Source: Basidiobolus meristosporus CBS 931.73 (taxonomy: Eukaryota; Fungi; Basidiobolomycota). From it: a stretch of DNA of 32,834 nucleotides. Shown in pieces: positions 361 to 19,100 of this stretch. Location of the stretch: NCBI GenBank assembly GCA_002104905.1, contig MCFE01000829.1:1-32834 (forward strand), written 5' to 3'. Every line of letters begins with the position of its first letter. Positions within the stretch are counted from its first letter, which is position 1. Under the pieces are notes generated by a model. That model searched no databases. It was not told the DNA's origin and saw nothing but the letters and a program-made list of their open reading frames with translations. Both the position numbers and the translations under genes were made by a program.

Positions 361-692
361 CTAAATCATGCAAAATAAAGGCCGATTTTTGCGGCACTCT
401 TTGGAGGCTCTCGCTACTTTTCTACCCATTTCCGGTTATGAGAGAAGTACCTACCACTTTCATGAAACACAGTATAGGCATCTTTATACCATGACTAGCA
501 TTGTTTATTGCGGTAGAAGGCAAACAGAAATCGAGTATTTATACTTCAGCTGCGGTGGTTGCCTCCGAAATATACTACATCATTTGACTGAAGCTTCCTA
601 GATGCGATATCTATAAGCCTCCGTCTTGTCCAAATGCTGTATCTGTATATAAAGGCTGGTGCTGAGCTTTATTAGAGTATTCGACTTTCACA

Positions 693-1129
693 ATGTACAA
701 ACAACTTACCGCAGCTTGTGCTCTATTAACGGTCGTCAGTGCCTTTGGAAGTCCCGTGGATGTGTCCAGCACAAATGTAGCGAGCGCATCCATCTCCGGT
801 AGGAACAAGTGGTGAAGAAGTTCTCGTCTAACAAGGAGGAGGATGCGCAAAATATTCGGCACTACATCGATGGCATTCTTGGCCAGATGTCAAGAAATGC
901 GTTCGATTGGACCCTCTCGGATAAGCAAGAAGCCGACCAAGGAGTCGAGGAAGAGGAGGGCGATCCTGAAGAGGCCGAGCTATGGGGGAGATACGGCGGA
1001 TATGGGCGGCGGAGGGGCAGATACTGGGGACGAGGACGCTACGGTCGCTACGGTGGTTATGGAGGTCGGTGGGGATATGGACGCTACGGGGGATATGGAG
1101 GGTACGGTGGATGCGACTGGGGTTGCTGA
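693..1129 (+). pseudogene. GY-family precursor copy A1, frameshifted
   Basis: ATG at 693 (MYKQLTAACALL...). It spans 437 nt versus 450 nt in intact copies, a net 13-nt loss near 798-806 giving TGA at 813-815. The rest of the precursor, including CDWGC*, lies in another frame (809-1129). Confidence 0.85.
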
Positions 1130-1265
1130 GTGAACTCCTTAATAACAAGGATCAAGGCTTTCATTCACTCCAACAACACAGCTTGTCTGTGTGCTTGAAT
1201 AAAGTACCGTTGCATTTTATCTATCGTAGTGAATGGCCATGTGATTATGACTCTTATTGAGAGTG

Positions 1266-1546
1266 CTAGCTGGCAGAGGCCCTCACTGCTCCAAAGGTCA
1301 CTTCTTTTCCGTTCTTCGCGATGTGTATCTCGAGTTGTTTGGAGGTAATCGTAGCAATCCTGTTCCTTTTCCTGTTGCAATCTTGCAGGGAAGGGTACAG
1401 GATCGCATTGGCGAAGGTGCTGGGCGGTCCGAAAGTGATGCTTGCGGTATCTACCGGTTCGCAGATCACGTGTTGGCATGAGCCGAGGTTGATATGTGGG
1501 TTAGCAGTACCACGGTTAAGGAGCAGAGAACGGATTTGAATTGCAT
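1266..1546 (-). pseudogene. D-family copy D1, frameshifted after the signal peptide
   Basis: ATG at 1546 reads MQFKSVLCSLTVVLLTHISTSAHANT*. The conserved body (CQHV...YPSLQDCN...KNGKEVTFGAVRASAS*) is in a different frame. Confidence 0.75.
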
Positions 1547-1941
1547 TGTGTGTGTTTCACCGCTGAATTGAATATTGAAGAGGATTGTATAAAGCTATAA
1601 GGAGATAAGCACGGTTGGCAAGGAGAGACAGGCAGAGTTACCATGACAATGAAGGGGAATATTTGATTATTGGAAGAACGGATATGATGCCAATTCATCA
1701 CGCTTACTTCAGTTTCTAGCCAAGAGAGCCCGTGCCTTGCTATTAGTATCACCAAGACGTTGCGGTTGCTACGGAGGATACACTCCATTCACCTTTTGCT
1801 GGATAATCATAATGATACGTAGGCATATTCTAGGCTTTCGTTCACTAGTCTGTTACAGTTGCTCTTTCATTCTGGCTGTGTATATCTAATGGGATGCATT
1901 CTTTGTAACTCCTGACTGAACAATGCGGTTTATTGAGGATG

Positions 1942-2368
1942 CTAGCTGACAGATACTCTTACTGCTCCAACAGTCACTTCTTTTCCGTTCTTCGCGATAT
2001 GTACCTCGAGTTGATTGGATGTTATAGCAGCAATCCTGTTCCTGCGATTGTTACAATCTTGCAGAGAAGGATACAAGATGGCTTGGGCAGAGGTACTGGG
2101 TGATTCAGGGGTGATGCTGGCAGTATCCACCGGTCCAAAGGTCACGCGTTGGCATGAGCCAGCTGAGAATGGTAGTTGTTGTGCAGTATCTTCAGGAGTA
2201 TTCACCAATTCTACATTGTAAGTATTTGGTTAGTAAGGCTCACTGGTTGCGGCTAGTTGAGTTATATACTGATTACATACTTAGTAACGCACTAGAGGAT
2301 TGTGCTGAAGTTGTTGTGCAGGCTAGTAGTGTCATGGTCAAGGAGAAGAAAACGGTACTGAATCGCAT
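1942..2368 (-). CDS. D-family copy D2: intact two-exon 118-aa secreted protein of unknown function
   Basis: Exon 1 is 2368-2281 (MRFSTVFFSLTMTLLACTTTSAQSSSALL). The 70-nt intron 2280-2211 has GTATGT, a CTAAC branch site and TAG. Exon 2 (2210-1942) joins in frame. ACACACAATG start context; two Cys in the mature part. Confidence 0.85.
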
Positions 2369-3075
2369 TGTGTGTGCCTCGGTGTGTGTGCTTCTGTGTG
2401 TACGTCTGATGAACAAGGTGAGCATTGTAAGCGATTTTATAGGAAATTAGCCCGGCTTGTAAGGAGAGACAGGCTGAGCTACCATGATGAAGCGGAACAT
2501 CCTGTACTATTGTATTCACTCCGAAATTTCCAAATTCGCTTTGGGCTAAGCATTTTTTTTAAAAGGAGAAACTATCGAACTCAAGCGAAGCTCCTTGTAT
2601 TGTTCGATTACACTGGGATGACTAGTGTTGGCTTGCATATGTGGCACGGATGCGTTGCCTGCTCACTTCCATTAGTATCGTAACGCCGATTATGGTGAGT
2701 GCGATCTAGGCGTAAATAAAGCGTTGTAGTTTCTGTTACACTTCAGCTTTAAATTTTGAGTACATGCTTAGTATTGAGTGTTACACATAGGTATTACCCA
2801 TTTGTAGCCCACTCATTCATCTCCTAGTGAAGGAATCAGATGGTGGTGATGACTTCTGGTGAAGAACGGCAAATGGTGGTGGTCGAACAAAAAGATGACC
2901 AGTGTGGGATTGATAACGTAAAAGATACACAAGAGTAGGCTCCGTTTATCCTTTGGTGCTCACCATGCGCAAGTACTTTTCCATCGTTCTAATACTTTTT
3001 AATGTGACAAGTGTATCCATCTCTTCTCCAAAGCCAGGAAACGGTGTGTAGGAAAAAGGTGCTCGCACCAGAGAG

Positions 3076-3147
3076 GGCAGGTGACGAGGTCGTTATGGTC
3101 ACTTCGGGGACTATGATGGTCGCTGGGAACTTGGAGGGTTTGCTTGA
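3076..3147 (+). pseudogene. Relic 3' end of a diverged GY paralogue (type C)
   Basis: Reads GR*RGRYGHFGDYDGRWELGGFA*. The same tail occurs at ~7836-7877. Confidence 0.5.
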
Positions 3148-3468
3148 GCTGCTAATTTAATACATCATGCTGTTAAGCTTACTACCAATATTGCGATCAT
3201 CCACAACTCTAAATCATGCAAAATAAATGCCAATTTTTGAGGCTCTCTTTTGAGGCTCTCGCTGTTTATCTACCCATTTCCGCTTACGAGATAAACACTT
3301 GCCACTTTCATATAACATAGTATAGAAATCTCTATACCACGACTAGTGTTGTTGTTAACAGAAATCGAGTGTTTGTACTTTGGCTGCGGTGGTTGCCTCC
3401 GAAATATACTACATCATTTGACTGAAGCTTCCTAGATGCGATATCAATCAACCTCCATCTTGTATGTG

Positions 3469-3476
3469 TATATAAA
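3469..3476 (+). promoter_or_regulatory. TATA box TATATAAA of GY type-A genes
   Basis: Starts exactly 47 nt upstream of the ATG in A1 (646), A2 (3469), A3 (5274), A4 (8199) and A5 (12260). TTCACAATG start context. Confidence 0.75.
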
Positions 3477-3515
3477 GACTGGTGCTGAGCTTTATTTGAG
3501 TATTCAACATTCACA

Positions 3516-3965
3516 ATGTACAAACAACTTACCGCAGCTTGTGCTCTACTAATGGTCGTCAGTGCCTTTGGAAGTCCCGTAGATGTGTCAAGCACAAATG
3601 TAGCGAGCGCGTCCATCTCCGATAGGGATCCACAAAGTGGCCAAGTGGTGAAGAGGTTCTCGTCCAACAAGGAAGAGGATGCGCAGAATATTCGACACTA
3701 CATCGATGGCATTCTCGGCCAGATGTCAAGAAATACGTTTGATCAGACCCTCTCGGATAAGCAAGACGCCGACCAAGATGTCGAGGAAGAGGAGGGCAAT
3801 CCTGAAGAGGCCCAGCTATGGGGGAGATACGGTGGATATGGGCGGCGGAGGGGCAGATACTGGGGACGAGGACGCTACGGTCGCTACGGTGGTTATGGAG
3901 GTCGATGGGGATATGGACGCTACGGGGGATATGGAGGGTATGGTGGATGCGACTGGGGTTGCTGA
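3516..3965 (+). CDS. GY-family copy A2: secreted Gly/Tyr/Arg-rich prepropeptide, 149 aa
   Basis: Hydrophobic signal peptide MYKQLTAACALLMVVSAFG, VVKR dibasic site, acidic tract, then WGRYGGYG...GGCDWGC. TATA box upstream and AATAAA at 4022. Confidence 0.93.
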   Translation: MYKQLTAACALLMVVSAFGSPVDVSSTNVASASISDRDPQSGQVVKRFSSNKEEDAQNIRHYIDGILGQMSRNTFDQTLSDKQDADQDVEEEEGNPEEAQLWGRYGGYGRRRGRYWGRGRYGRYGGYGGRWGYGRYGGYGGYGGCDWGC

Positions 3966-4021
3966 ATAATAAGAATCAAGGCTTTCATTCACTCCAACAA
4001 TACAACTTGCCTATTTGCTTG

Positions 4022-4027
4022 AATAAA
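4022..4027 (+). terminator. Putative polyadenylation signal AATAAA of GY genes
   Basis: Also found at 1198, 8752, 11863, 12813 and 15099 downstream of paralogues. Confidence 0.55.
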
Positions 4028-4090
4028 GTACCGTTGCATTTTATCTATTGATAGTGAATGGCCATGTGATTATGACTCTTATTGAGAATG

Positions 4091-4353
4091 CTAGTTGGCA
4101 GAGACTCTCACTGCTCCAACAGTCACTTCTTTTCCGTACTTCGCGATGTATATCTCGAGTTGTTTAGAGGTAATCGTAGCAGTCGTGTTCCTTTTACGGT
4201 TGCAATCTTGCAGGGAAGGGTACAGGATTACTTTGGCGGAGGTGCTGGGTGGACCGGAAGTGATGCTTGTGATATCTACCGGTTCGCAGGTCACGTGTTG
4301 ACATGAGCTGATGTTGACACGGTTAAGGAGCAGAGAAGGGTATTGAATCGCAT
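4091..4353 (-). pseudogene. D-family copy D3, frameshifted
   Basis: Reads MRFNTLLCSLTVSTSAHVNT*. The body frame 4294-4091 is open but out of frame with the ATG. Confidence 0.75.
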
Positions 4354-4745
4354 TGTGTGTGTTTCACCACTGAATTGGATACTGAAGAGGACTGTATAGA
4401 GCTTTAAGGGGATAGGGACGGTAGGCAAGGAGAGATAGGCAGAGTTACCATGGCAATGAAGGGGAATATTTGATCACTCCTGGGTGTATTACCCTTACTT
4501 CAGTTTCTAGCCAAGCGAGCCCGTTCCTTGCTACTAGTAACATAAAAAGGCTTAAATCAAGTGAAGTACGGGCTCTACAATTTTATAGTATGAGTAGCTT
4601 GTTTTAGTGTGCGTGGCTTGAATTTCTATTCGCTGTAAGTGTAAAACCGGATTGAATGCATGCATATATTTGTAGAGTGAAATAACTCATTGAAATCTCT
4701 ATAGTCTTACCGTTAGGCATATGACTGATAGTAGTGGTGAAAGAT

Positions 4746-4772
4746 GATGCCCCGTTGATGCCCCGTTGATGC
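4746..4772. repeat. 11-bp VNTR GATGCCCCGTT, 2.5 copies (3.5 copies at 13411-13448)
   Basis: Read directly from the sequence. Confidence 0.9.
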
Positions 4773-4892
4773 GTAGATAAGCCTTTCATACGAGGATTCT
4801 GTTTCAATATTGTCTGCCTCAAAACACGGATTTTTAAGATTTTTTACCCTGAGCTTTGTGGAGTGTATCATTTGAGCGTTTGTTTAATAACA

Positions 4893-4966
4893 AAGACACT
4901 GACTCTGAAGAGGCCGAGCTTTGGGGTAGATATGGTGGCTATGGAAGGTGGGGGAGCAGATACTGG
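4893..4966 (+). pseudogene. Internal fragment of a type-B GY gene
   Basis: Encodes DTDSEEAELWGRYGGYGRWGSRYW, matching B1/B2. Both ends are missing. Confidence 0.8.
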
Positions 4967-5320
4967 CTAATCTTCCATGAATGCCGTCTATAGCTTTCTT
5001 ATATTCATGTGGTGCTGTCGACCTGGACTGTACGAACCATTTTGCTTTACATTCTGCTTTCTATAGTATCTAATGGTCTGACTACTACTAATATGACGAT
5101 TAATTAGTATATACTATATGGTGACACTATTCTAGAGGCTCTTATTGTATCTTCCTAATGCCTGTAGAATAGATGCAAAATATAATATATCGTTCGTCCG
5201 AAACCCATCAATTTCGCGAAGCTTCCTAGATGTGATGTCTATAAACCTCCGTCTTGGCCAAAAGCTGTCCCTGTATATAAAGGCTGGTGCCGAGCTTTAT
5301 TGGAGTATTCAACATTCACC

Positions 5321-5713
5321 ATGTACAAACAACTTACCGCAGCTTGTGCTCTACTAATGGTCGTCAGTGCCTTTGGAAGTCCCGTAGATGTGTCAAGCAC
5401 AAATCTCCGATAGAAACCCACAAAGCGGCCAAGTGGTGAAGAAGTTCTCGTCCAACAGGGAGGAGGATGCGCAGAATTTTCGACACTACATCGATGGTAT
5501 TCTCAGCCAGATGTCAAGGAATACGTTCGATCGAGCAAGCAAGGCGCCGATCAAGGAGTTGAGGAAGAGGAGGGCAATCCAGAAGAGGCCGAGCTATGGG
5601 GCAGATACTGGGGACGAGGACGTTACGGTTGCTACGGTGGTTATGGAGGTCGATGGAGATATGGACGCTACGGGGGATATGGAGGCTATGGTGGATGCGA
5701 CTGGGGTTGCTGA
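5321..5713 (+). pseudogene. GY copy A3, multiple deletions
   Basis: A 17-nt deletion after ACAAAT gives TAG at 5411-5413. Further deletions include a 30-nt loss of GRYGGYGRRR. Confidence 0.85.
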
Positions 5714-5784
5714 ATAGTAAGAATCAAGGCTTTCATCCACTCCAACAATACAACTTGCCTATGTGCTTGAATAATAGCTTCAAT

Positions 5785-5966
5785 GGTCACTTCTTTTCCG
5801 TTGTTTGGAGGTAATCGCAGCAATCCTGTTCCTTTTCCTGTAGTTATCTTGCGGAGAAGGGTGCAGGATTGCTTTGGCGGAGGTGCTGGGTGGTCACATG
5901 TTGGCATGAGCTGAGGTTGATACGCAGGTTAATGGTTAAGGAGCAGAGAACAGTATTAAATCGCAC
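5785..5966 (-). pseudogene. Degenerate D-family copy downstream of A3
   Basis: Start mutated to GTG. Clear nucleotide homology to D1/D3 with several deletions. Confidence 0.7.
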
Positions 5967-6242
5967 TGTGTGTGTCTCACTGTTGAATTGAATATTAAAG
6001 AAGATTGTATAGAGCTATAAGGGGATAAGCACGGTTGGCAAGGAGAGACAGGTAGAGTTACCATGACAATGAAGGGGAATACTTGATTATTGGAAGAACA
6101 GATATGATGCCAATTCATCACGCTTATTCAAAGTCCTATAGAATATTAACTATATGGTTGGAGAGTGACAACATTGATAACTTTATTATGGGAGGTATTA
6201 TAATAGGGGAGTAGTATATATATGGTAATTATACTCATGTAG

Positions 6243-7319
6243 CTATCTATTCCAGAAGCAGCTAGCCCACGGATCAAATATTTCATCAATAGTGAATATT
6301 TCAAATTCATCTGTTTCAAACTCTTTGCAAAATGAGTTTCGCATATTAGGGTTTTGTGCAAAATATCTGTAAAGATATTGCAAATTCTCAGATTTCATCT
6401 CAGCTAATCGGTTAGCTGAAAATATTGTGGGGTAGGACAAAATACCAGTGCCTAAGAAGTTTGTGATCATATATACTGGCCCAGCCCGGTCCAGAGCCTG
6501 CTTAAAACGGTTATAGTTAAAATGAGGATATTGCTTACGTATTGTAAACCGTAATGCGCGTAGAATGATCTTGCTGGCCCCAAGAGCAGTTCAAATTGTT
6601 GATGGTTGGTGGTTTGTCAGTGTCATTCTTGCAAAGGTACTATAGCAGCTGTAAAGGTTATAGTAAAATGCATTGGATGCTCCGGTGGCTGCTTCTTCCA
6701 TAATTCTGCACTGATGTACATCCTTTGATAACATGCGCAAGAATCCTAATATTGATATTGGCATTTGTTGACTGCCGTAGCCATACACACCAGATTCTTG
6801 TGTTTCTGAAGGTGAGCAGCCAGCATCCTTTGCTAGCTGCTTGGCCAATCTGAACTTTGTTGTGTATTGCTGAATGTCGCAAATGAATTGGGATACCTTT
6901 GGATTCTGAATATTGCTAATATTTCCAGTGTTAAGCTCTGTTGCAGTGGAAAAGGGCGTAATGTTGTAGCTATTTGCTACTTGAATAGAATTCAGCAGTA
7001 AATGGCTAGTTGCATGCTCAAGAAACCTCAAATCATCCTCCATTGAAGTTCCATCGCAATAAACAGTAGTAAATATGCCACCTGATGAAGTTGATGTGAT
7101 CTTGAAGCGATGAAGAATTGCCTTGACGGTTGAGATTATTCTGTGGGCCTCTTGCCAGCTTCTGACCTCCAAGCAGAGCTTTACAGCACTGGCAACTGTA
7201 GGGTGCTCATTGGTCCATTCAAGGAGGGTTTGCATATTCACATAATTGCTTTGTTTTAAGGTGGGGTTTAAATCTCCACCTGGAGACAAAGCAATCAAAG
7301 CTCCGTGCATGGTAAACAA
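6243..7319 (-). CDS. Single-copy gene or young pseudogene of unknown function, probably spliced
   Basis: A 242-codon ORF (7319-6591) and a 75-codon ORF (6470-6243) on the same strand. A candidate intron GTAAGC...TTTAAG at 6538-6501 joins an upstream exon to the 3' ORF. One more splice or frameshift near 6590-6640 is needed and is unresolved. No recognisable domain. Confidence 0.45.
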
Positions 7320-7610
7320 AGAGTTTTATAAACAAGAAGCCATAGACAAGCCAGCAAAAATAAATACACATAAATTTTCAAGTTTAATCTATAATGAGTG
7401 GTAAATTGGCGACTTTGCCAAACTTGAAAAGTCCAATACATGCCTAGGCAGGTGGATAACTGGTTATCATATTGACAGTGTAACCTATAGATTCAATCTA
7501 TATGCGTGTTAATACGCAATCATATTGCAAATAAACTTGTAGAAGTCTATTACCGTTGTGATAGAATATTTGTAAGTTGAAACTTATAGAGGGGTGATTG
7601 CTTCCAAAAT

Positions 7611-7877
7611 ATACAATGGCAATTCCAGTCTGACAAGGAGGAAGATGCGCGTAATATTTGAGGCTTTATTGATGGCCTTCTTGGCCAAATATAAAAGAGT
7701 ACATTCATAAATATTGTCTCTAATTAAGGAGCCTCAGAGGAGGAGGAAAGTGATCCAGAAGCCCAGTTGTGGGGGCGATACAATAGAGAGGCAGGCATTG
7801 GGAATATGGACGCTACAGTGGATTTGGAGGTTTGCGGGGACTATGATGGTTGCTGGGAACTTGGAGGGTTTGCTTGA
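7611..7877 (+). pseudogene. Diverged GY paralogue (type C) with stops and frameshifts
   Basis: Reads QFQSDKEEDARNI*GFIDGLLGQI*...EEEESDPEAQLWGRY, homologous to the A/B pro-region and processing site. Confidence 0.75.
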
Positions 7878-8245
7878 GCTGCTAATTTAATACATCATGC
7901 TGTTAAGCTTACTACCAATATTGCGATCATCCACAACTATAAATCATGCCAAATAAAGGCCAATTTTTGAGGCTCTCTTTTGAGGCTCTCACTGGTTTTC
8001 TACCCATTTCCGTTTATGAGAGAAATACTTGCCGCTTTCATATAACATAGTATAGAAATCTCTATACCACGACTAGTGTTGTTGTTAACAGAAATCGAGT
8101 GTTTGTACTTTGGCTGCGGTGGTTGCCTCCAAAATATACTACATCATTTGACTGAAGCTTCCTAGATGCGATATCAATCAACCTCCATCTTGTATGTGTA
8201 TATAAAGACTGGTGCTGAGCTTTATTTGAGTATTCAACATTCACA

Positions 8246-8695
8246 ATGTACAAACAACTTACCGCAGCTTGTGCTCTACTAATGGCCGTCAATGCCTTTG
8301 GAAGTCCCGTGGATGTGTCAAGCACAAATGTAGCGAGCGCATCCATCTCCGATAGGGATCCACAAAGTGGCCAAGTGGTGAAGAGGTTCTTGTCCAACAA
8401 GGAAAAGGATGCGCAGAATATTCGACACTACATCGATGGCATTCTCGGCCAGATGTCAAGAAATACGTTTGATCAGACCCTCTCGGATAAGCAAGACGCC
8501 GACCAAGATGTCGAGGAAGAGGAGGGCAATCCTGAAGAGGCCCAGCTATGGGGGAGATACGGTGGATATGGGCGGCGGAGGGGCAGATACTGGGGACGAG
8601 GACGCTACGGTCGCTACGGTGGTTATGGAGGTCGGTGGGGATATGGACGCTACGGGGGATATGGAGGGTATGGTGGATGCGACTGGGGTTGCTGA
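8246..8695 (+). CDS. GY-family copy A4, 149-aa prepropeptide
   Basis: Intact and near-identical to A2, with an identical 48-aa C-terminal peptide. Confidence 0.93.
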   Translation: MYKQLTAACALLMAVNAFGSPVDVSSTNVASASISDRDPQSGQVVKRFLSNKEKDAQNIRHYIDGILGQMSRNTFDQTLSDKQDADQDVEEEEGNPEEAQLWGRYGGYGRRRGRYWGRGRYGRYGGYGGRWGYGRYGGYGGYGGCDWGC

Positions 8696-8820
8696 ATAGT
8701 AAGAATCAAGGCTTTCATCCACTCCAACAATACAACTTGCCTATGTGCTTGAATAAAGTACCGTTGCATTTTATCTATTGATAGTGAATGGCCATGTGAT
8801 TATGACTCTTATTGAGAATG

Positions 8821-9101
8821 CTAGTTGGCAGAGACTCTCACTGCTCCAACGGTCACTTCTTTTCCGTACTTCGCGATGTATATCTCGAGTTGTTTAGAGG
8901 TAATCGTAGCAGTCGTGTTCCTTTTACGGTTGCAATCTTGCAGGGAAGGGTACAGGATTACTTTGGCGGAGGTGCCGGGTGGACCGGAAGTGATGCTTGT
9001 GATATCTACCGGTTTGCAGGTCACGTGTCGACATGAGCTGATGTCGACACGCGGGTTAGCAGTGCCACGGTTAAGGAGCAGAGAAGGGTATTGAATCGCA
9101 T
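8821..9101 (-). pseudogene. D-family copy D4, frameshifted
   Basis: Reads MRFNTLLCSLTVALLTRVSTSAHVDT*. The body frame 9024-8821 is open. Confidence 0.75.
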
Positions 9102-9537
9102 TGTGTGTGTTTCACCACTGAATTGGATACTGAAGAGGACTGTATAGAGCTTTAAGGGGATAGGGACGGTAGGCAAGGAGAGATAGGCAGAGTTACCATG
9201 GCAATGAAGGGGAATATTTGATCACTCCTGGGTGTATTACCCTTACTTCAGTTTCTAGCCAAGCGAGCCCGTTCCTTGCTACTAGTAACATAATAAGGCT
9301 TAAGTCAAGTGAAGTACGGGCGCTACAATTTTATAGTATGAGTAGCTTGTTTTAGTGTGCGTGGCTTGAATTTCTATTCGCTGTAAGTATAAAACCGGAT
9401 CGAATGCATGCATATATATTCGTAGAGTGAAAGAACTCACTGGCTCTTGTGGAAATCTATTCAAAACACGAATCTTTATAGCCTTCCCACTACTGATAGT
9501 GGTGGTGAAAGACACGCCCAGTTGATGTGTAGATAAG

Positions 9538-9735
9538 GTAAAAGGCTTTACCAACTTAGGTATTTATCCCAAGTGAAATGTAAGTATCGGTGCTTAGTGA
9601 AAGGTTCCACGAGGTCGGGGTTCGCGAAGACTTTGCTAAAGACGTGGGGACAAAACCGGGGAGATACGCGATGAGAGACGGGGATTACGTCCTATTGAAC
9701 CTCCATCACTCCCTACCACGGCTGTCCCTCACCGG
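9538..9735. mobile_element. ~198-bp CpG-rich insertion absent from the paralogous spacers
   Basis: Paralogues read TAGATAAG|CCTTTCATACGAGG (~4775 and ~13450); here extra sequence intervenes. Possible GGCTT duplication at 9544 and 9734. No clear terminal inverted repeats. Confidence 0.4.
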
Positions 9736-9839
9736 CTTCCATACGAGGATTCTGATTCAACCTCTCGTCTGCCCCACAGCACGGATAAGATCTTATGACC
9801 ATCTGATCTTTGTGGAGAGTATCTTTTGAGCGTTTGTTC

Positions 9840-11290
9840 GATAACAATGATGGCTATGATAGATAAGTAAACTTACTTTGGCGCCTGATGGTAAGATGGA
9901 GCATCTATCACATCAAGCTGGCAGCATTCCACTTGCCAAGTTATTACCTACTGATACTTACATAGACGATCATAAGGTTTATTGTAGTCATACTCAAAAT
10001 ATTATTACCTCTTCAGTATTCTCCACAGCAGTGCAGTGGCCTCAGCACTTGCTGTTATGAACAGTTTCCTTCACAGGTATGGCTAAAGTCTCAATATACT
10101 GGGACATTGGCATGCTTTGTACGGTGCTCCAGCTGTCTTTCAGAGAGGCTCCTACTGTTTAGCTGATTACAGCACACTAGCATAAATAGGCCATGCTTAA
10201 TCATTATTTCTTGTCAATAATTGCCTTCTGCAGAAAGCCAAATACCAACACATGACTTGCTTTGTACTCCCTCTGCAGGTAGCTACCAGATATACAGCTG
10301 TACTGCATAGGACTCTGCTTCATATAGTAATTTGGTGTTATTTTGAACACTGATAAGCAAGAGTAGGAACTCTCTATTGCTCTAAAGCTACTGGTAAAAC
10401 ATACGCTCAGTAAACTTGTTCTAGGCGGCATTCCTACTCATGTTTTTGCAATAAATAATCTTATAGCATATAGAATGGTGCTGATAGCTCCTTGATCCAT
10501 ACTGTTGGCTATTGGAGTTAGCCTGCAGTAGGGATTTTGAACTTACATCGACTCCTTGGTGAGCAGTTCTTTATGTAATTGATGATTGAAAGTTGCTTAC
10601 AGGCTGCCCAGGTGTAATAGGCCTCTGCTTTCATCATTTTAGACACTTCTAAATCAGTGTTGTACTATCAAGTACCCTATATTCTCCACAATATCCCAAT
10701 ATTTGAAGATATTTGCAACAGATACTGTACAACTAAGAATGAAAATGGAATACTTGAGGCAATCAATGGTTGTCATTTAGTAATAATGATCGCAGCTAGT
10801 TCTCAGTGCTTGAACCGCAGCCCCTTCCAATATCAGCTAGCATGAACTTACAACAAGCTATATGCACTGAGAATATATGAGATAAGTACACTAATTTTTA
10901 TATTATCGCAGCCTAACTTGGAGCTTACTAATTCCGCTTACCATACACCGACCAAGTATATACTCCAGGATTTACTGCGGCAGGTTAACTGTATGTGTAA
11001 CCGACTGGGAATAAATGCTGGAGTTGGCTCAAGAGATGTCATCAATCATGCCATTCTTCAGTAAATATGAAGATACAAAGGAATCTATGGCATCAACAGA
11101 AAGGAATAATGACGCTACAGTGACAGGATACATTGGTACATGGAGATGACTGCAACTGGAAGTTCACACAATCAATATTAGCATATGGTTAATATGGAGG
11201 TGGCTAACCTGTAACATATCTGCTAAACAAATGATCTTTTTAAGCTTTTTGTTGTGTATTGCGTGTTTGATTGAATGAAGAGCCACTAAA
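9840..11290. repeat. CpG-poor spacer duplicated at ~13560-14620
   Basis: Shared blocks such as CCTTCACAGGTATGGCT.AAGTCTCAATATACTG and ACACATGACTTGCTTTGTA. No intact ORF. Confidence 0.75.
11075..11165 (+). pseudogene. Ancient GY relic (type E) upstream of B1
   Basis: GGAATCTATGGG...GACGCTAC...CATGGAGATGACTGCAACTGG, homologous to 14490-14585. Confidence 0.4.
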
Positions 11291-11422
11291 CAGCTTCTAT
11301 TGAACAGCCAAATGGATCACCCGCAGCGCTTCCCACTGAAGGCAGAGGTAAAGTTGAGTGTCTTTAATGCTGTGCGGGTATATATACTCATAATCAGCTC
11401 AAGTGCTTCATTCAGATTCACA

Positions 11423-11842
11423 ATGTACAAGCACTTCTCCGTCACCTTTGCTCTCCTAATTGCCTCATATGCGGTGGCAACCCCTGTGCAGACAGAAGCA
11501 ACCAATGTAGCAAGTGCTTCCATCTCCATCCGGGACCCACAAAGCGGCAAAATGATAACACAATTCCAGTCCACAAAAGACGAAGATGCTCGCGCCATTC
11601 TTGACGACATATTCGGCCAAATGTCAAGCGGTGGGTTGGCAGATGAACAAGCGTCTCCTACAAGTGAAGACACTGACTCAGAAGAGGCCGAGCTTTGGGG
11701 TAGATATGGTGGCTATGGAAGATGGGGAAGCAGATACAGGGGACGAGGACGTTACGGTCGCTATGGTGGCTACGGAGGCCGATGGGGATATGGGCGCTAC
11801 GGGGGATATGGTGGCTATGGTGGATGCGACTGGGGTTGCTAA
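11423..11842 (+). CDS. GY-family copy B1, 139-aa prepropeptide
   Basis: ATG at 11423 in TTCACAATG context with TATATATA at 11379. Signal peptide MYKHFSVTFALLIASYAVA, acidic tract, 48-aa GY peptide ending CDWGC. Confidence 0.92.
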   Translation: MYKHFSVTFALLIASYAVATPVQTEATNVASASISIRDPQSGKMITQFQSTKDEDARAILDDIFGQMSSGGLADEQASPTSEDTDSEEAELWGRYGGYGRWGSRYRGRGRYGRYGGYGGRWGYGRYGGYGGYGGCDWGC

Positions 11843-12021
11843 TGCACTACATCCTTACGTTTAATAAACATCATAATGACAATGCTCATCGTAATTAATC
11901 AGTGATGTTTACCAAGCTGCAGCATGGAGAGAAAGTCGGATATGTGTATGGATAAGGTGGATGTCTAGGCAAAGATAAGTCTTATTGCAGTTTGGCTGTC
12001 AATTATCTTCATAAATGGTGC

Positions 12022-12089
12022 CAATCTTTACCTTTAAATGCGGTCAATTTTTACCTTCAATGCTGTCAATTTTTACCTTTTAATGGTGT
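12022..12089. repeat. ~22-bp tandem repeat x3 (CAATTTTTACCTT..AATG..GT)
   Basis: Read directly; lies between B1 and A5. Confidence 0.7.
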
Positions 12090-12306
12090 ACTGTTAGTAG
12101 TCATTTTTTTTCGCATGATAACACTACTCTAGAAGCTCTTATTGTATCTTCCTAATGCCTGTAGAATAGATGCAAAATATAATATATCGTTCGTCCGAAA
12201 CCCATCGATTCCGCGAAGCTTCCTAGATGCGATATCAATCAACCTCGATCTTGTATCTGTATATAAAGGCTGGTGCTGAGCTTTATTGGAGTATTCAACA
12301 TTCACA

Positions 12307-12756
12307 ATGTACAAACAACTTACCGCAGCCTGTGCTCTACTAATGGTCGTTAGTGCCTTTGGAAGTCCCGTAGATGTGTCAAGCACAAATGTAGCGAGCG
12401 CATCCATCTCCGATAAGAACCCGCAAAGCGGTCAAATGGTGAAGAAGTTCTCGTCCAACAGGGAAGAGGATGCGCAGAATATTCGACACTACATCGATGG
12501 CATTCTCGGCCAGATGTCGAGGAATACGTTTGATCAGACCCTCTCGGATAAGCAAGAAGCCGACCAAGGAGTCGAGGAAGAGGAGGGCAATCCTGAAGAG
12601 GCCCAGCTATGGGGGAGATACGGTGGATATGGGCGGCGGAGGGGCAGATACTGGGGACGAGGAGGTTACGGTCGCTACGGTGGTTATGGAGGTCGGTGGG
12701 GATATGGACGCTACGGGGGATATGGAGGGTATGGTGGATGCGACTGGGGTTGCTAA
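12307..12756 (+). CDS. GY-family copy A5, 149-aa prepropeptide
   Basis: Intact from the ATG at 12307. One R>G change in the mature part. Confidence 0.93.
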   Translation: MYKQLTAACALLMVVSAFGSPVDVSSTNVASASISDKNPQSGQMVKKFSSNREEDAQNIRHYIDGILGQMSRNTFDQTLSDKQEADQGVEEEEGNPEEAQLWGRYGGYGRRRGRYWGRGGYGRYGGYGGRWGYGRYGGYGGYGGCDWGC

Positions 12757-12881
12757 ATAATAACAATCAAGGTTTTCATTCACTCCAACAACATAGCTTG
12801 TCTGTGTGCTTGAATAAAGTACCGTTGCATTTTATCTATTGATAGTGAATGGCCATGTGATTATGACTCTTATTGAGAATG

Positions 12882-13139
12882 CTAGTTAGCAGAGACTCTC
12901 ACTGCTCCAACGGTCACTTCTTTTCCGTAGTTTCGAGGTAATCGCAGCAAACCTGGTCCTTTTCCTGTTGCAATCTTGCACAGAAAGGTACAGGATTGCT
13001 TTGGCGGAGGTGCCGGGTGGTCCGGGAGTTATGCTTACAATATCCAATGGCCCGGCACTCACGTGTTGCCATGAGCCAAGGTTGATACGCAGGTTGGCAG
13101 TACCATGTTTAAGGAGGAGAGAACGGTATTGAGTCGTAT
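12882..13139 (-). pseudogene. D-family copy D5
   Basis: ATG mutated to ATA, the same frameshift junction (...AHGNT*), and internal deletions. Confidence 0.7.
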
Positions 13140-14489
13140 TGTGAGTACTTCACCGTTGAATTGAATATTAAAGAAGATTGTGTAGAGCCATAAGGGGATA
13201 AGCAGAGTTACTAAGATAATGAAGGGGAACAATATACAACTTTATCGTGTGTATGACTTGTTATAGTGTGTGTGGCTTGGGTTTCGATACGTAAACAAAT
13301 GGCATAGTTGCTTTGATTGAATGCATGCATATAATCGTAGAGTGAAATAACTCATTGAAATCTCTATAGTCTTACCGTTGGGCATATAACTGATAGTGGT
13401 GGTGAAAGATGATGCCCCGTTGATGCCCCGTTGATGCCCCGTTGATGCGTAGATAAGCCTTTCATACGAGGATTCTGATTCAAAAACGTCTGCCTCAAAC
13501 ACGGATTTTGACCAAGACAAGACCGTGTGACCATCTGAGCTTTGTGGAGTGTATCTAACCATGACGGCTATGGTAGATAAATACACTCATGATGAAGTAT
13601 TTATCACATCAAGCTACTAGTCAAGTTATTACTTACACTCTGATCACTGACTGACACTTACACCATCATATCTCTGGTGTATAGAAGATCATAAGGTTTC
13701 AAAGAACCATTATCTTTTCAGCATTCTCAGCAGAAATACTCACTTACTGCTATTCCCAGCTCTTCCTTCACAGGTATGGCTGAAGTCTCAATATACTGAG
13801 AGATTGGCAGGCTTTGTACAGTACTCCAGCAGTCTTTCGGAGATGCTTTCACTATTCAGCTCACTAAGCATAAACATGACATCAGCCAAGCAACAAGCAT
13901 TATTTCTTGGTACTCATAGCAAATTCCAACACATGACTTGCTTTGTATTCCCACTTCAGGTAGCTATAGGATATACATAAGACTCTGCTTCATACAGTAT
14001 GTTGGTGCTCTCTTGACTATTGCTAAGTGAATATATGCTCTACTGGCAAAACATAAACTCGGTAAACTTATTCCTGTCCTCACAATAGATACCTTTGTAG
14101 CATAAAGCATGTTGGTGGACTTTTTGGTATATGTTTTCTACAATATTTGAACACGCTTGCTACAACTCATTGGAGATATTCACAAATGAGACTATACAAC
14201 TAAAAATGATCACTTGATGCAATAAATGGACGTTGTTTGATAAGAATCCTTCAATGCTTGAACCAGCCCATACAAATATCAAACAAACTATATGCACTAC
14301 AAGGGAATATATCATATAAGTACAGAAGTACAATAATCTTTATATTTCGTATACCACCGTTCAGCTGAGCTATACACTGACTCCATATATACTTCAGGGC
14401 GTGCTGTGGCATGAATAACCGGCTAGGAATAAATAAAGGAGTTGGATGTAACTAGATAGGTTTATCAAGCTCCATCATCATTCCATTCC

Positions 14490-14585
14490 TGAAGATGTGG
14501 AGGGAGTTATGGCAGCAACGGAAGGAGATTAGGACGCTACGTTTCTGGGGCACATTGGGACATGGAGATGGCTGCAACTGGAGTC
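14490..14585 (+). pseudogene. Ancient GY relic (type E) upstream of B2
   Basis: Contains ELW, GGACGCTAC and GHGDGCNWS, which resembles GYGGCDWGC. Confidence 0.45.
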
Positions 14586-14671
14586 AAAATTTGGTCCGCA
14601 CAATCAACAGCGGTATCCTCAATATGTGGCTAATATGTACAATCCGCTCAACTCCTTCATTCAGATTCAAA

Positions 14672-15078
14672 ATGCACCATCACTTCTTCATCACCATTAC
14701 TCTCTTAATCGCTTCGTATGCAGTAGCGATTCCTGTGCAGCCAGAAGTGACCAATATAGCAAGTGCTTCCATCTCCATCCGGGGCCCACAAAGCGGCAAA
14801 ATGATAACACAATTTCAATCCACAAAAGACGAGGATACTCGCGCCATTCTTGACGACATATTCGGCCAAATGTCAGGCGGTGGGTTGGCAAAAGAACAAG
14901 TGAAGACACTGACTCTGAAGAGGCCGAGCTTTGGGGTAGATATGGTGGCTATGGAATACAGGGGAGTAGATACTGGGGGCGAGGACGTTACGGTCGTTAT
15001 GGTGCTTACGGAGGTCGTTGGGGATATGGTGGCTACGGAGGCTATGGAGGCTACGGTGGATGCGACTGGGGTTGCTAA
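14672..15078 (+). pseudogene. GY copy B2, frameshifted
   Basis: A 13-nt deletion between two ACAAG repeats (versus B1) shifts the frame before the acidic tract. The GY peptide is intact in another frame and ends CDWGC* at 15078. Confidence 0.85.
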
Positions 15079-15215
15079 TTCACCACATCCTTACCTTAAA
15101 TAAACATCACATTGTCAATGTTTCATGCTCAACTTCATACTTTCAATAGGCAACGCCCCATACTAAGCCTCATTGTAATTAACAGAAGCCACTCGGTGAT
15201 GTTTGTATAGTTCAT

Positions 15216-15268
15216 CAAGCTGCGGTTTTCATAGTTCCTCAAGCTGCAGTTTTCATAGTTCCTCAAGC
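15216..15268. repeat. 24-bp tandem duplication CAAGCTGC.GTTTTCATAGTTCCT x2
   Basis: Read directly from the sequence. Confidence 0.85.
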
Positions 15269-15407
15269 ACAAAGCTAGAAGCTCTGATAGTTTCTTCCTA
15301 ATGCTTGTATCATAGATTCGATTGAAACCCATCAATTCTGCGAAGTGTCGTAGATGCAATGTCTATTAACCTGGTTTAGTATATAAATCGAGTGTTCAGC
15401 ATTCACA

Positions 15408-15611
15408 ATGTACAAGCAACTTACCGCAGCTGGTGCTCTACTAATGGTCGCCAGTGCCCTTGGAAGTCCCGTGGGTGCGTCAAGCACAAATCTCCGATAG
15501 AAGCCCACAAAGCGGCCTAGTGGTGAAGAAGTTCTTGTCCAACAGGGAAGAAGATGCGCAGAATATTCGACACTACATCGATGGTATTCTCAGCCAGATG
15601 TCAAGGAATAC
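15408..15611 (+). pseudogene. GY copy A6, 3'-truncated
   Basis: Carries the same 17-nt deletion as A3. Homology stops after ...CAAGGAATAC, so the GY peptide and the D copy are missing. Confidence 0.85.
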
Positions 15612-16199
15612 TCTTATAAAATAACTGGCCTATGCACATGAATAGATTTTTGCTACTTGGCGTATGTGTAGTGAGTGCAATATAACTCGATAGTATGCGT
15701 GGCTTGGGCCTCTAAACGTAATTTAATGCCGTAGTGATTCTTTCTTGTCTGAATGCATGCAGAGTTCGATCGACGAATGTGAGTAAAGAGTAACAATGAG
15801 CTGGAACGAATTGTTCTTTCTACTTTTGACAAAATCACACGCCGACTCTTATCGCCGTATCAAGTAACCTTCAATTAGGCACTTTATCTGTTTTCTTATG
15901 CTACTCTGTACAGATTACTATGGATAGCTTACTATGGATAGCATATATATAAACTTTATTCTTTGGTATTGCACATCCATAATATGGTCATATGGGCAAG
16001 GAGCTCTTATCCTTCATATTTATATATGTTGTTCTTATTATATTTATTATTGTTACCATCTTTGGAGTGTATCTATGCATGGTTGATTGATAGTTTTGAT
16101 TGTCAGAGTAAACGAGTATTGTAGTTGTGCATAATGCCTCATTTTTTTGCTCCATTGTATTAATCTGTTACTATTGTGCTAGCCGTCAACTTGCTGATA

Positions 16200-19100
16200 C
16201 TTTTAGCCATCAATCAGCAACTCTTGTTCAAATCAGTCATGTCTACTGATGCATTGGGGCTCCAGATTATATCAAAAAATTTGCCCCTTTAAAGACTAAG
16301 GTACCATGAAATCATCTAGTTCTGCTTTCAAAACTTTGTATAGGTAGTGTGCTACATGAATATAGATTAATGCTTCTTTTAAAGCAGTAAAGGTATTGTT
16401 TAGTCCTTCCCCAAAGTCACTGTGTAGATGTTGTAAAGACCAGAGTATTTCTGCTCTTCCTCTATGGCCAGTGAAGGCAGTATAGGTGCTGCTTGTGTTA
16501 CATGACTTCCAACTTGCTTGTACCTGTCAATTTGCTTGTTTTAAAGCCTTCTATATACTTGTGTTATTTTGCAGCCCTCTGAGTTGTCAGAGTTGATAAA
16601 TGTTGAATAAAGTACTTGAGTGAATACTTGTTCCACCATGATCAATCTGAAACTTGCACCTCTTCTGATAATGTGTTGGTATTTGACTTTTATTCCAAGG
16701 GTATTTATCTGTCACTCAACTGGTGCTTTCCTTCTTATTTCTATTCAGAAATATTCATGAAAGTTTTGTGCAACTTATTGTCAAATTGATGTGTCTGTTG
16801 TTTGGTCTAGCCTCCTGTTAGTGTCTATTCCTCTTGTCTGCTCAATAGCTAGGGCCAGAGATATTGATCTTTATTAGCTCCATTAAGCTCTGAGTTCAGT
16901 AAACATTACAATGGTATTTTGCTCATCTTTAACTACTTTTCTACTCAGCGTAAGTTAGCTGCTAGAGAAAGCTCAAAGAACTAAATTTAAAAGGACAAAG
17001 GGACTCTATGCTAGCTGATTGTTGAACAAAGGGTTACCAAGCCTGTGTGTAGAGACAACAATGATCCCCATTCAGCTGCTAAGCTGTGAGTTTGGCATAT
17101 ACAGACTGTCTATAAATCAATGTAATTAGAACTATGAAATACACATAAGTCACTCTAAGTGGTGGAAATATACATGTCTTCACAGTGCTCAGTTAATAGG
17201 TTGCACACTAACTTAATCAGTGTATGCAAGGCAGCCACAATGTAGTTGTAGCAAAGCATTTCTTAGTAAAGTCCTGCAAGGTGATGCTATTTCTGGTGAT
17301 CACTGGTACTAGACCAGCTGTTGTTGTATCCCTAAACCTGCACAAGTCCCCAATATCAGTTTCCTTAATTATTTAGTCTGCTTGTCCTTTAGAAATGCCC
17401 AAAAGGCATTACACTAATCTGAAGCAGTGCTACACTGCAATGCTATGAATGAGTAGGTGATGTATATCTGCTCTGCCTTACTATTGCTGCAATGGATGCT
17501 ACTATGATGCACCCTTGTAAATTTAACCTCATTGAAAATCTCAAAGTTGGAATAAATCTGATTTTCTGCTAGTACTCAGTTGGTATTCTGATGGGATTTG
17601 AAGGTATTCAGCTGTTATTTTTTCTTCAAGTTGTTGGTTGCAATTTTTGTTTGAAGTAGTAAGCAGCTGTTAACCAAACCTGGTATGAATGCCAGTTGGC
17701 CTATCCTCCTCATACAGAATATATGTGCTGGTCATTCCAACAGGTAGTGCCTGATATATAAAGAGGTGTATATATAGAACACCTGAATTGAGCCAACATT
17801 ATGGTGGTATTTTGCTGACCATCTCAAAGTCCTTTCTGTTTGGGAAGAGTGCTTTGGTGCATATGTTGGGGACACAGGAGTAGCAGCTGATATTACTAAT
17901 TCTAATATTTCTGAGCTTCACATATATATTTGCAATCTACTTTACTGCAGGTAGGTTGTAAACCTAGTATATCACATACTAGTTCACTTTACTGTATTCA
18001 ACAAACTAATTCCAGTTGGGAGACAGTAAGTCTATATTTGTAGGCAAATATAGGATCACATGTGTAGAGAAGCAGTGGGCCTTATCAGTGCTCTGATGAA
18101 TGGCAAACTGGCAATGCAGTACTTGAGCTCTACTTTTGAGTTGCATAGCTGCAATTGTTGCCTTAGACAAAACCAATGCATCTACATATTTCTATAGCTA
18201 CTTCCTCAGAATTGCCAATGTTACTTGCTTAATCTCCTATTGAATCCTTGGTACTGATGGATATAGTCCTTGTGTGCTCAGTTAAACTGGTAATTGACTC
18301 TATGGTTTAAGTTATGCTCAGGAGACTAATTTAGGAGCCAAGAGCATCTTATGCACTTCAATACAGCTATATAACTCTATGTATGCTTTGCATACTCAAG
18401 TGACAGTATTTTTTTGTGGTACTCTCAGCTTTAATTCATTGGTTGGCTGTCATGTCATCTTCTATACTATAATACCAATGATACTGATGAGTTATTTGGC
18501 AATTGTAGATCACTAGAGCTACATGCTTGATACTGGGCAGTGAGCTACCATGAATGAGACAAAAGTGGGCTCAAAAAAGGTGACCAGGCACATATTGATC
18601 ACATCTAAATATAGCTACGGCTAAAAAATGGTGTGGAGCAATTCTGCAATTTACTGAAGCCCTCACCAATTGAATCAACAGTGGCCTGGAAATAGGTAAT
18701 CATCATGTACTGCACCAATGATGAGCATACTCAGTTCTGATAGCTCAATAGTAGTGGTTATACTAAGTGGTATATATTTTCATGAATGAAATATGTATAT
18801 TCAGGCAAAGCTAATGCATTAACAGACTGTGCAAATCTTTAAACACTTAAGATTCAAAATCCTTACCATTATAGTATCAGATAGCTTAAGCTACTTACAA
18901 GCTTTCATAGCTCATCAGAATGCAACATATATATTTGGTGTGTTTGGTTGTCAACTGGTGGTTATGCCATTGAGTTGCAAATGTTTTGTCAAGTTACTAA
19001 GTCAAGGTCAAACAAAGTCCAATGTAAGTCTGATATGCTGCTTTGCAGCACATTCCATCACTGCACAACATGATGTGGCACCCTTTGATACTTTGGGCAT

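Follow-up and report, generated by a model that had tools for sequence, protein, structure and literature searches.

A tandemly amplified Basidiobolus family of two-part proteins with a conserved glycine-, arginine- and tyrosine-rich tail: candidate antimicrobial peptide or spore adhesive

The window analysed here is a complete scaffold (32.8 kb) of Basidiobolus meristosporus CBS 931.73, a fungus of guts and dung. From the first ATG at position 693 to position 15611, where the last fragment stops, its plus strand carries eight related units, namely four intact genes (A2, A4, A5 and B1), three broken copies (A1, A3 and B2) and one 5' fragment, and a repeat search recovers a 225-nucleotide (nt) unit in seven copies. 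The genes encode small proteins in which an acidic N-terminal part is followed by a cationic tail of 48 amino acids (aa). The family is real, has not been described before and is under selection, and it is probably either a defence peptide or a glue. The reading tentatively preferred here, with somewhat less than even confidence, is that the intact units are working genes, that their family is specific to Basidiobolus and comprises small, secreted two-part proteins that are mostly disordered, and that the tail of these proteins would most likely be released as an antimicrobial peptide of the type known in nematodes as neuropeptide-like proteins (NLP) and caenacins (CNC).

Protein plan, charge balance and selection on the tail

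A previous sequence-only reading of this DNA had described four intact genes sharing a signal peptide, a pro-region, an acidic tract, the motif EEA(E/Q)L and the tail, and the alignment bears this out: the order of the parts in all four is a hydrophobic N-terminus, a moderately conserved middle, an Asp/Glu tract ending in EEA(E/Q)L, and the 48-aa tail. The signal peptide is 19 aa long, the mean Kyte-Doolittle (KD) hydropathy of its hydrophobic core is 2.0-2.3, and the cleavage motifs are of the AxG/AxA type (AFG↓S or AVA↓T). Together with the tandem arrangement of the copies and a TATA box (TATATAAAG) that is kept approximately 40 nt upstream of the start codons of A1-A5, these features agree with the proposal that these are amplified genes of a secreted type. 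The tails of A2 and A4 are identical, and the composition first reported for them (G21 R10 Y10 W4 C2 D1, six residue types) is exact on recount.

The tail has an isoelectric point (pI) of 10.2 and a mass of 5.5 kDa; Gly accounts for 44% of its residues, Tyr for 21%, and Gly, Tyr and Trp together for 73%. It holds three or four YGGYG-type motifs and four YGG[YW] motifs, the sequence RYGGY occurs three times (p 2e-5 against shuffles), and the protein ends in CDWGC, that is, in a C-x3-C closure. The underlying DNA is a degenerate 9/18-nt tandem repeat, which is the reason why some copies show in-frame tail deletions of 3, 6 or 10 residues.

The acidic part that was proposed to precede a cationic peptide is also there, and the two charges roughly balance: among 23 members the N-part carries -7 to -12 and the tail +7 to +9, so that an acidic segment offsets the charge of the putative mature peptide. 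In A2 the last 30 residues of the N-part have a net charge of -9, and for the B. meristosporus protein the front part alone gives -11, the tail +9 and the whole about -2. The junction between both parts reads EEA(E/Q)L/WGRY, with an invariant Leu-Trp pair. AlphaFold2, run with a family alignment of 14 sequences, predicts a helix in the signal peptide, another at residues 54-85 and no others; the mean predicted local distance difference test score (pLDDT) is 45, the tail stays below 45 and shows no secondary structure, and on this prediction the protein is treated as largely disordered.

The strongest constraint falls on the tail. Comparison of the tails of the A and B subfamilies (24 pairs, not independent) gives 12-16 synonymous and 3-5.5 non-synonymous differences, with a synonymous divergence (dS) of 0.47-0.71, a non-synonymous divergence (dN) of 0.03-0.05 and a dN/dS of 0.05-0.09. 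Non-synonymous changes make up 4 of 19 tail changes, versus 76% expected (binomial p 8e-7). The dN/dS of the N-part is 0.26-0.34, with dS saturated, and on these values the tail is the most constrained part of the protein. The effect of losing the reading frame was compared in 31 tail-bearing copies from six loci: the 14 intact-frame copies carry 0-2 tail substitutions each (mean about 0.5), and the mean of the 17 broken copies is about 3.3. The Mann-Whitney test (p 2e-4) was computed on 13 intact versus 18 broken copies, with means of 0.38 and 3.28, one copy scored there as broken being intact. Judging by these substitutions, the tail is under strong purifying selection in intact copies, and this selection is relaxed in broken ones.

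One gene at another locus (L003, 3148-3567) is a chimera with a B-type front and an A-type tail, the DNA of the latter being 96-97% identical to A tails versus 85-87% to B tails; gene conversion or recombination between the two subfamilies therefore also homogenises the tails. Gene conversion lowers dS and dN alike, so it does not explain the low dN/dS of the tail.

The +1 frame of the tails (843-1133, 3679-3969, 8409-8699 and 12470-12760) is open as well and encodes an acidic sequence rich in Asp, Glu, Thr, Val and Met, and several public models of broken copies read this frame (P0002, P0006, P0008, P0010-P0013, P0039, P0043 and P0044). The possibility that it specifies a second product was considered and rejected: synonymous changes track the Gly/Arg/Tyr frame, and the models are read-throughs of frameshifted copies.

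Database searches and the relatives in Basidiobolus ranarum

The sequence-only reading had recognised no described fungal family in these proteins, and this has held, as no characterised family matched in Pfam, NCBIfam, PDB or two billion-scale protein sets. The only Pfam matches were below threshold, one to the glycine-rich protein family GRP (PF07172; 12.9 bits against a cutoff of 30, E 0.18) and one to an apicomplexan microprotein; NCBIfam returned no family at E values up to 5, and PDB just noise from the G/F region of DnaJ. Outside Basidiobolus there was no match in a word-indexed search of 5.8 billion protein clusters, nor in an exhaustive profile search of 1.84 billion representatives in which the query was the non-repetitive front part, while a word search with the tail only retrieved just two short Basidiobolus models. 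Metagenomes gave no match to a profile scan or to an exact 22-nt tail pattern, and the ESM Atlas gave no usable match to the tail and, with the whole protein, one chance-level oomycete cluster named "glycine-rich protein" (0.83). Public annotation contains the family as hypothetical proteins only, and the literature search found nothing on Basidiobolus with glycine-rich peptides, nor on any fungal family of glycine/aromatic-rich cationic secreted peptides.

Two automatic UniRef labels, "RxLR effector" and "RSAM-associated Gly-rich repeat", were not reproduced; the second one, attached to two members, had no NCBIfam match at E values up to 5. A fungal ribosomal peptide precursor of the dikaritin type was likewise rejected, given the single C-terminal tail, the lack of flanking KR sites and the lack of any enzyme-like open reading frame (ORF) or Pfam hit among the neighbours.

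The profile search did find three homologues in B. ranarum, of 115-119 aa (P0046, P0051 and P0052). Their signal peptide and helical core are 33-39% identical to those of the B. meristosporus proteins, the core reading VVRKFKS..EEDA..IQH.IE.MIHRMS in B. meristosporus and VVKRFSS..EEDAQNIRHYIDGILGQMS in B. ranarum. All three end in a mixed-charge segment and have no Gly/Arg/Tyr tail, and no tail is encoded in any of the six frames of two fetched B. ranarum loci, the fragmented state of the assembly meaning that absence from the species is not proven. The N-part must therefore be an older domain in its own right and not merely a pro-piece. The tree of the N-part has three groups only and cannot be rooted, and for this reason both a gain of the tail in B. 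meristosporus and its loss in B. ranarum are possible.

The strong acidic tract is found only in the tail-bearing members and is missing from the tail-less homologues, whose mature proteins have a net charge of -3 to 0, similar to that of the whole B. meristosporus protein. The tract and the tail therefore go together, and their co-occurrence is the best evidence in this analysis that the former may neutralise the latter.

Possible roles of the tail

While the family belongs to none of the families tested, its design resembles known classes of animal peptides or adhesives. The preferred reading can be laid out as follows. The acidic tract would neutralise the tail in cis, and this neutralisation would hold a sticky, basic segment soluble and harmless during secretion. 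The tail would be the selected working part outside the cell, most likely freed by a protease at the Leu-Trp junction, and, once free, it would attack bacteria or fungi in dung and gut contents in the manner of the cationic antimicrobial peptides of nematodes that are rich in glycine and aromatic residues (NLP and caenacins). A disulphide loop at the C-terminus would shield the end of the peptide, and the dozens of near-identical copies would provide dosage.

The nematode NLP and CNC peptides are basic and glycine/aromatic-rich, they contain YGGYG/YGGWG motifs, and their genes are clustered and duplicated (PMC6780910, PMC2453101); one of them, NLP-31, is antifungal in vitro (PMC11112505). Basidiobolus, in turn, lives in the gut alongside dense bacterial communities (PMC7466969). 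The fungal proteins resemble the products of the NLP-29 cluster and the CNC peptides in combining a secreted-type N-terminus with a basic, glycine/aromatic-rich peptide of repeated YGGYG/YGGWG motifs, and in being encoded by small, tandemly duplicated genes with lineage-specific expansions (PMC6780910, PMC2453101, PMC11112505). They differ in several respects: no search matched the fungal precursor to nlp or cnc sequences, the dibasic sites that flank the peptide in NLP/CNC precursors are missing at the fungal junction, the fungal protein has a long acidic N-part and a C-terminal C-x3-C, its tail is near-invariant instead of diversifying, and the producer is a fungus and not an animal.

Precursors of defence peptides classically place an acidic segment before the cationic peptide and carry a small disulphide loop at the C-terminus. 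In the anionic-propiece precursors (alpha-defensins and the amphibian skin peptides with a C-terminal "Rana box") the known plan consists of a signal peptide, an acidic segment and a cationic C-terminal peptide. The fungal protein shares this order, an acidic segment of about matching charge and a small, putative C-terminal disulphide loop; it differs in having no Lys-Arg processing site, in its C-x3-C loop, which is shorter than the Rana box, and in an N-part that is conserved by itself, without cargo, in B. ranarum.

Several observations weigh against release of the tail as an antimicrobial. The junction of the N-part and the tail lacks a dibasic (Kex2-type) site, and the KR pair at residues 46-47 is not conserved. 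The near-invariance of the mature part and the divergence of the N-part invert the situation in nlp genes, for which a diversifying pattern is reported (PMC2453101). With ten Arg and 14 aromatic residues, the tail would be short-lived amid gut proteases. Finally, the N-part occurs in B. ranarum without any cationic cargo, and an unprocessed two-part protein, such as the cement glycine-rich protein (GRP) of ticks, is therefore equally possible.

This last point leads to the alternative of a cohesive or adhesive material, not necessarily cleaved, which is held to be a less probable but still substantial candidate. The acidic N-part would here provide solubility, and Arg, Tyr and Trp "stickers" spaced by Gly would phase-separate after secretion through cation-pi and pi-pi contacts; oxidation of Tyr or the two Cys could then cure the material, which could be a glue on capilliconidial tips or a coat on the spore surface. 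The composition of the tail, its three RYGGY motifs and its pLDDT below 45 do describe a secreted-type, predicted disordered segment with regularly spaced Arg and aromatic residues in a Gly spacer, contacts between Arg and Tyr in RYGGYR-type peptides favour phase separation, and the many near-identical copies fit bulk production. The capilliconidia of the Basidiobolaceae bear an adhesive-covered beak (PMC13370150).

The tick cement GRP (Q4PME3) has the same layout: behind a signal peptide of 19 aa, a negative N half confers solubility and a cationic C half of Gly, aromatic residues and Arg brings about phase separation (bioRxiv 10.1101/2023.03.27.534361). Both proteins are disordered according to AlphaFold and belong to multigene families. 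There is no sequence relationship between them, and Arg plus aromatics amount to 50% of the fungal tail versus approximately 20% in GRP. The tick protein phase-separates uncleaved via cation-pi and pi-pi contacts. The mussel adhesive protein mfp-3 (Q9GUX8) has 46 aa, contains RRYGGY, GW and RGRWGR, and is close to the tail in size and composition (PMC9287526): both have a mature size of 46-48 aa, are rich in Gly, Tyr, Arg and Trp, carry RYGGY, GW and RGR motifs, have a strongly basic character and exist in numerous gene variants. Unlike the fungal protein, mfp-3 has no acidic N-part or Cys pair, and it contains Asn, Pro and Lys. The likeness to glycine-rich antimicrobial peptides and to mfp-3 that was pointed out from the sequence alone thus stands for motifs and composition and fails for homology, the BLASTP comparison with mfp-3 giving an E value of 0.066 for a single pair, which is not significant with composition correction.

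Other facts speak against an adhesive. B. ranarum is also expected to form adhesive spores, and the tail was found neither in its annotated homologues nor in the six frames of both fetched loci. The position-by-position invariance of the tail exceeds the needs of a bulk material, and the window contains no gene for a modifying enzyme.

A structural protein of the cell wall or the zygospore wall is an improbable third candidate. It would have its Gly/Tyr/Trp tail set into chitin and glucan and cross-linked, as in the glycine-rich wall proteins of plants or the eggshell proteins of trematodes, and the high Gly and Tyr contents, the weak Pfam GRP match and the thick bilayered walls of the resting spores of Basidiobolaceae are in line with it. 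However, that match misses the Pfam threshold, the tail is short and the B. ranarum homologues lack it, and the protein terminates at CDWGC with no glycosylphosphatidylinositol (GPI) or other wall-anchor signal.

The least probable proposal, to which very little credence is given, is that the protein is a precursor of bioactive peptides directed at a host or vector, in which trypsin-type cuts after Arg would free fragments starting with Tyr-Gly-Gly-Tyr, the motif by which nematode NLP-24 acts on opioid-type receptors. A tryptic map of the tail does yield YGGYGR, YGGYGGR and YGGYGGYGGCDWGC, RYGGY is enriched over shuffled sequences (see above), YGGYG peptides activate NPR-17 and the human kappa and mu receptors in cell culture (PMC11112505, PMC4427864), and the fungus inhabits vertebrate guts (PMC7466969). 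Against this, the motif follows from the GRYGGYG repeat unit and needs no receptor, and the tail was not found in B. ranarum, which occupies the same niche. If the proposal were true, peptides freed by gut trypsin could alter the gut motility or the behaviour of an amphibian or reptile host, or of an insect carrier.

Genomic setting, neighbouring features and implications

At 90% identity the annotated proteins form an A cluster of 28 members and a B cluster of 11, and many more family models lie on at least 14 scaffolds, mostly on small scaffolds or at scaffold ends. The five other loci compared follow the window collinearly, genes and spacers alike, with a nucleotide identity of 91-97%. In the window the gene cluster ends approximately 8 kb from the edge of a ribosomal DNA (rDNA) array, and locus L002 repeats the layout of cluster, AT-rich spacer and large-subunit (LSU) rDNA at about 93% identity; this flank of the array therefore exists in two or more diverged copies. 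The collinear loci and the rDNA flank of L002 imply that two processes together set the copy number, tandem duplication within a cluster and the copying of an entire cluster along with its rDNA flank, and the latter may be segmental or derive from polyploidy.

This setting raises the question of whether the family is only a passenger of a recombination-prone repeat that flanks rDNA, with a copy number set by segmental duplication and polyploidy and a product of little or no function. The proximity of the rDNA edge, the recurrence of the layout in L002 and the majority of broken copies among the 31 examined would fit such an origin. It is contradicted by the purifying selection on the tails of intact copies and its relaxation in broken ones, and 14 of the 31 copies retain intact frames and conserved promoters, so that a passenger is considered unlikely, marginally more so than a wall protein.

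The individual units and the other features of the window are listed in Table 1.

Table 1. Family units and other features of the window, with their positions and strands.
Feature	Position	Strand	Remarks
A1, broken copy	693..1129	+	ATG at 693; 13-nt deletion after the signal peptide causes a frameshift (alignment and sequence)
TATA box TATATAAAG, upstream of A2	3469..3477	+	about 40 nt before the A2 start codon
A2, intact, 149 aa	3516..3965	+	signal peptide 3516-3572; acidic N-part 3573-3818; tail 3819-3962; stop 3963-3965
A3, broken copy	5304..5713	+	17-nt and 10-nt deletions (two frameshifts); in-frame 30-nt tail deletion
A4, intact, 149 aa	8246..8695	+	corresponds to P0023
B1, intact, 139 aa, second subfamily	11423..11842	+	corresponds to P0034
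A5, intact, 149 aa	12307..12756	+	one tail substitution (R to G)
B2, broken copy, B subfamily	14672..15078	+	13-nt deletion in the N-part; four tail substitutions
5' fragment of an A3-like copy	15390..15611	+	93% identical to the 5' end of A3
rDNA array edge	23446-32834		right end of the window
Partial LSU	23446-26190		model positions 665-3399
5S	27030-27148	-	
Small subunit (SSU)	29916-31722		
5.8S	31889-32042		
Next LSU, start	from 32303		

B1 is 64% identical to A2 overall, and its tail differs from that of A2 at four residues and from the B consensus at 1 of 48. In A1 the tail frame (809-1129) remains open and encodes a consensus tail; the public model P0024 bridges the break in this copy by means of a GT-AG "intron" at 776-801, whose length of 26 nt is implausibly small. 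The broken copy A3 is present in identical form in locus L001, and P0008 is its annotated alternative-frame product. At L006 (MCFE01000112.1, 148-164 kb) there is an older, more decayed cluster, with 5-8 substitutions in its tails and a copy (P0050) that is ended by a stop inside the tail.

A second small family, "D", lies tail-to-tail after each A copy (minus strand of the window, 1266-1469, 1942-2208, 4091-4294 and 8821-9024; L001, 8427-8820; L002, 2679-3072). It has been co-duplicated with A, and most of its copies in the window look truncated; on other scaffolds it is modelled as a spliced protein of 107 aa with a 70-nt GT-AG intron, and it has no match in Pfam, NCBIfam or PDB. Between A3 and A4 there is a 242-aa ORF (6591-7319, minus strand), kept in L001 at 14407-15167 with a stop there, for which no family match was found. 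The cluster is separated from the rDNA edge by an AT-rich stretch with hardly any long ORFs (15600-22900, GC 0.35-0.38), and a 113-aa ORF (22954-23295, plus strand) with a signal-peptide-like start, eight Cys and no Pfam match abuts the truncated LSU.

If the tail is antimicrobial, it would represent a new class of fungal defence peptide, from a lineage that has received little study and shares its habitat with gut bacteria. As a glue, it would give spore adhesives of the entomophthoralean type their first known molecular component, and the cation-pi chemistry used in the cements of mussels and ticks would have been invented independently here. Both readings are directly testable, since a peptide of 5.5 kDa with six types of residue, such as this tail, can be synthesised. 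In either case, the tail-less homologues of B. ranarum offer a natural before-and-after case for the joint origin of a low-complexity tail and the acidic tract that would compensate it.

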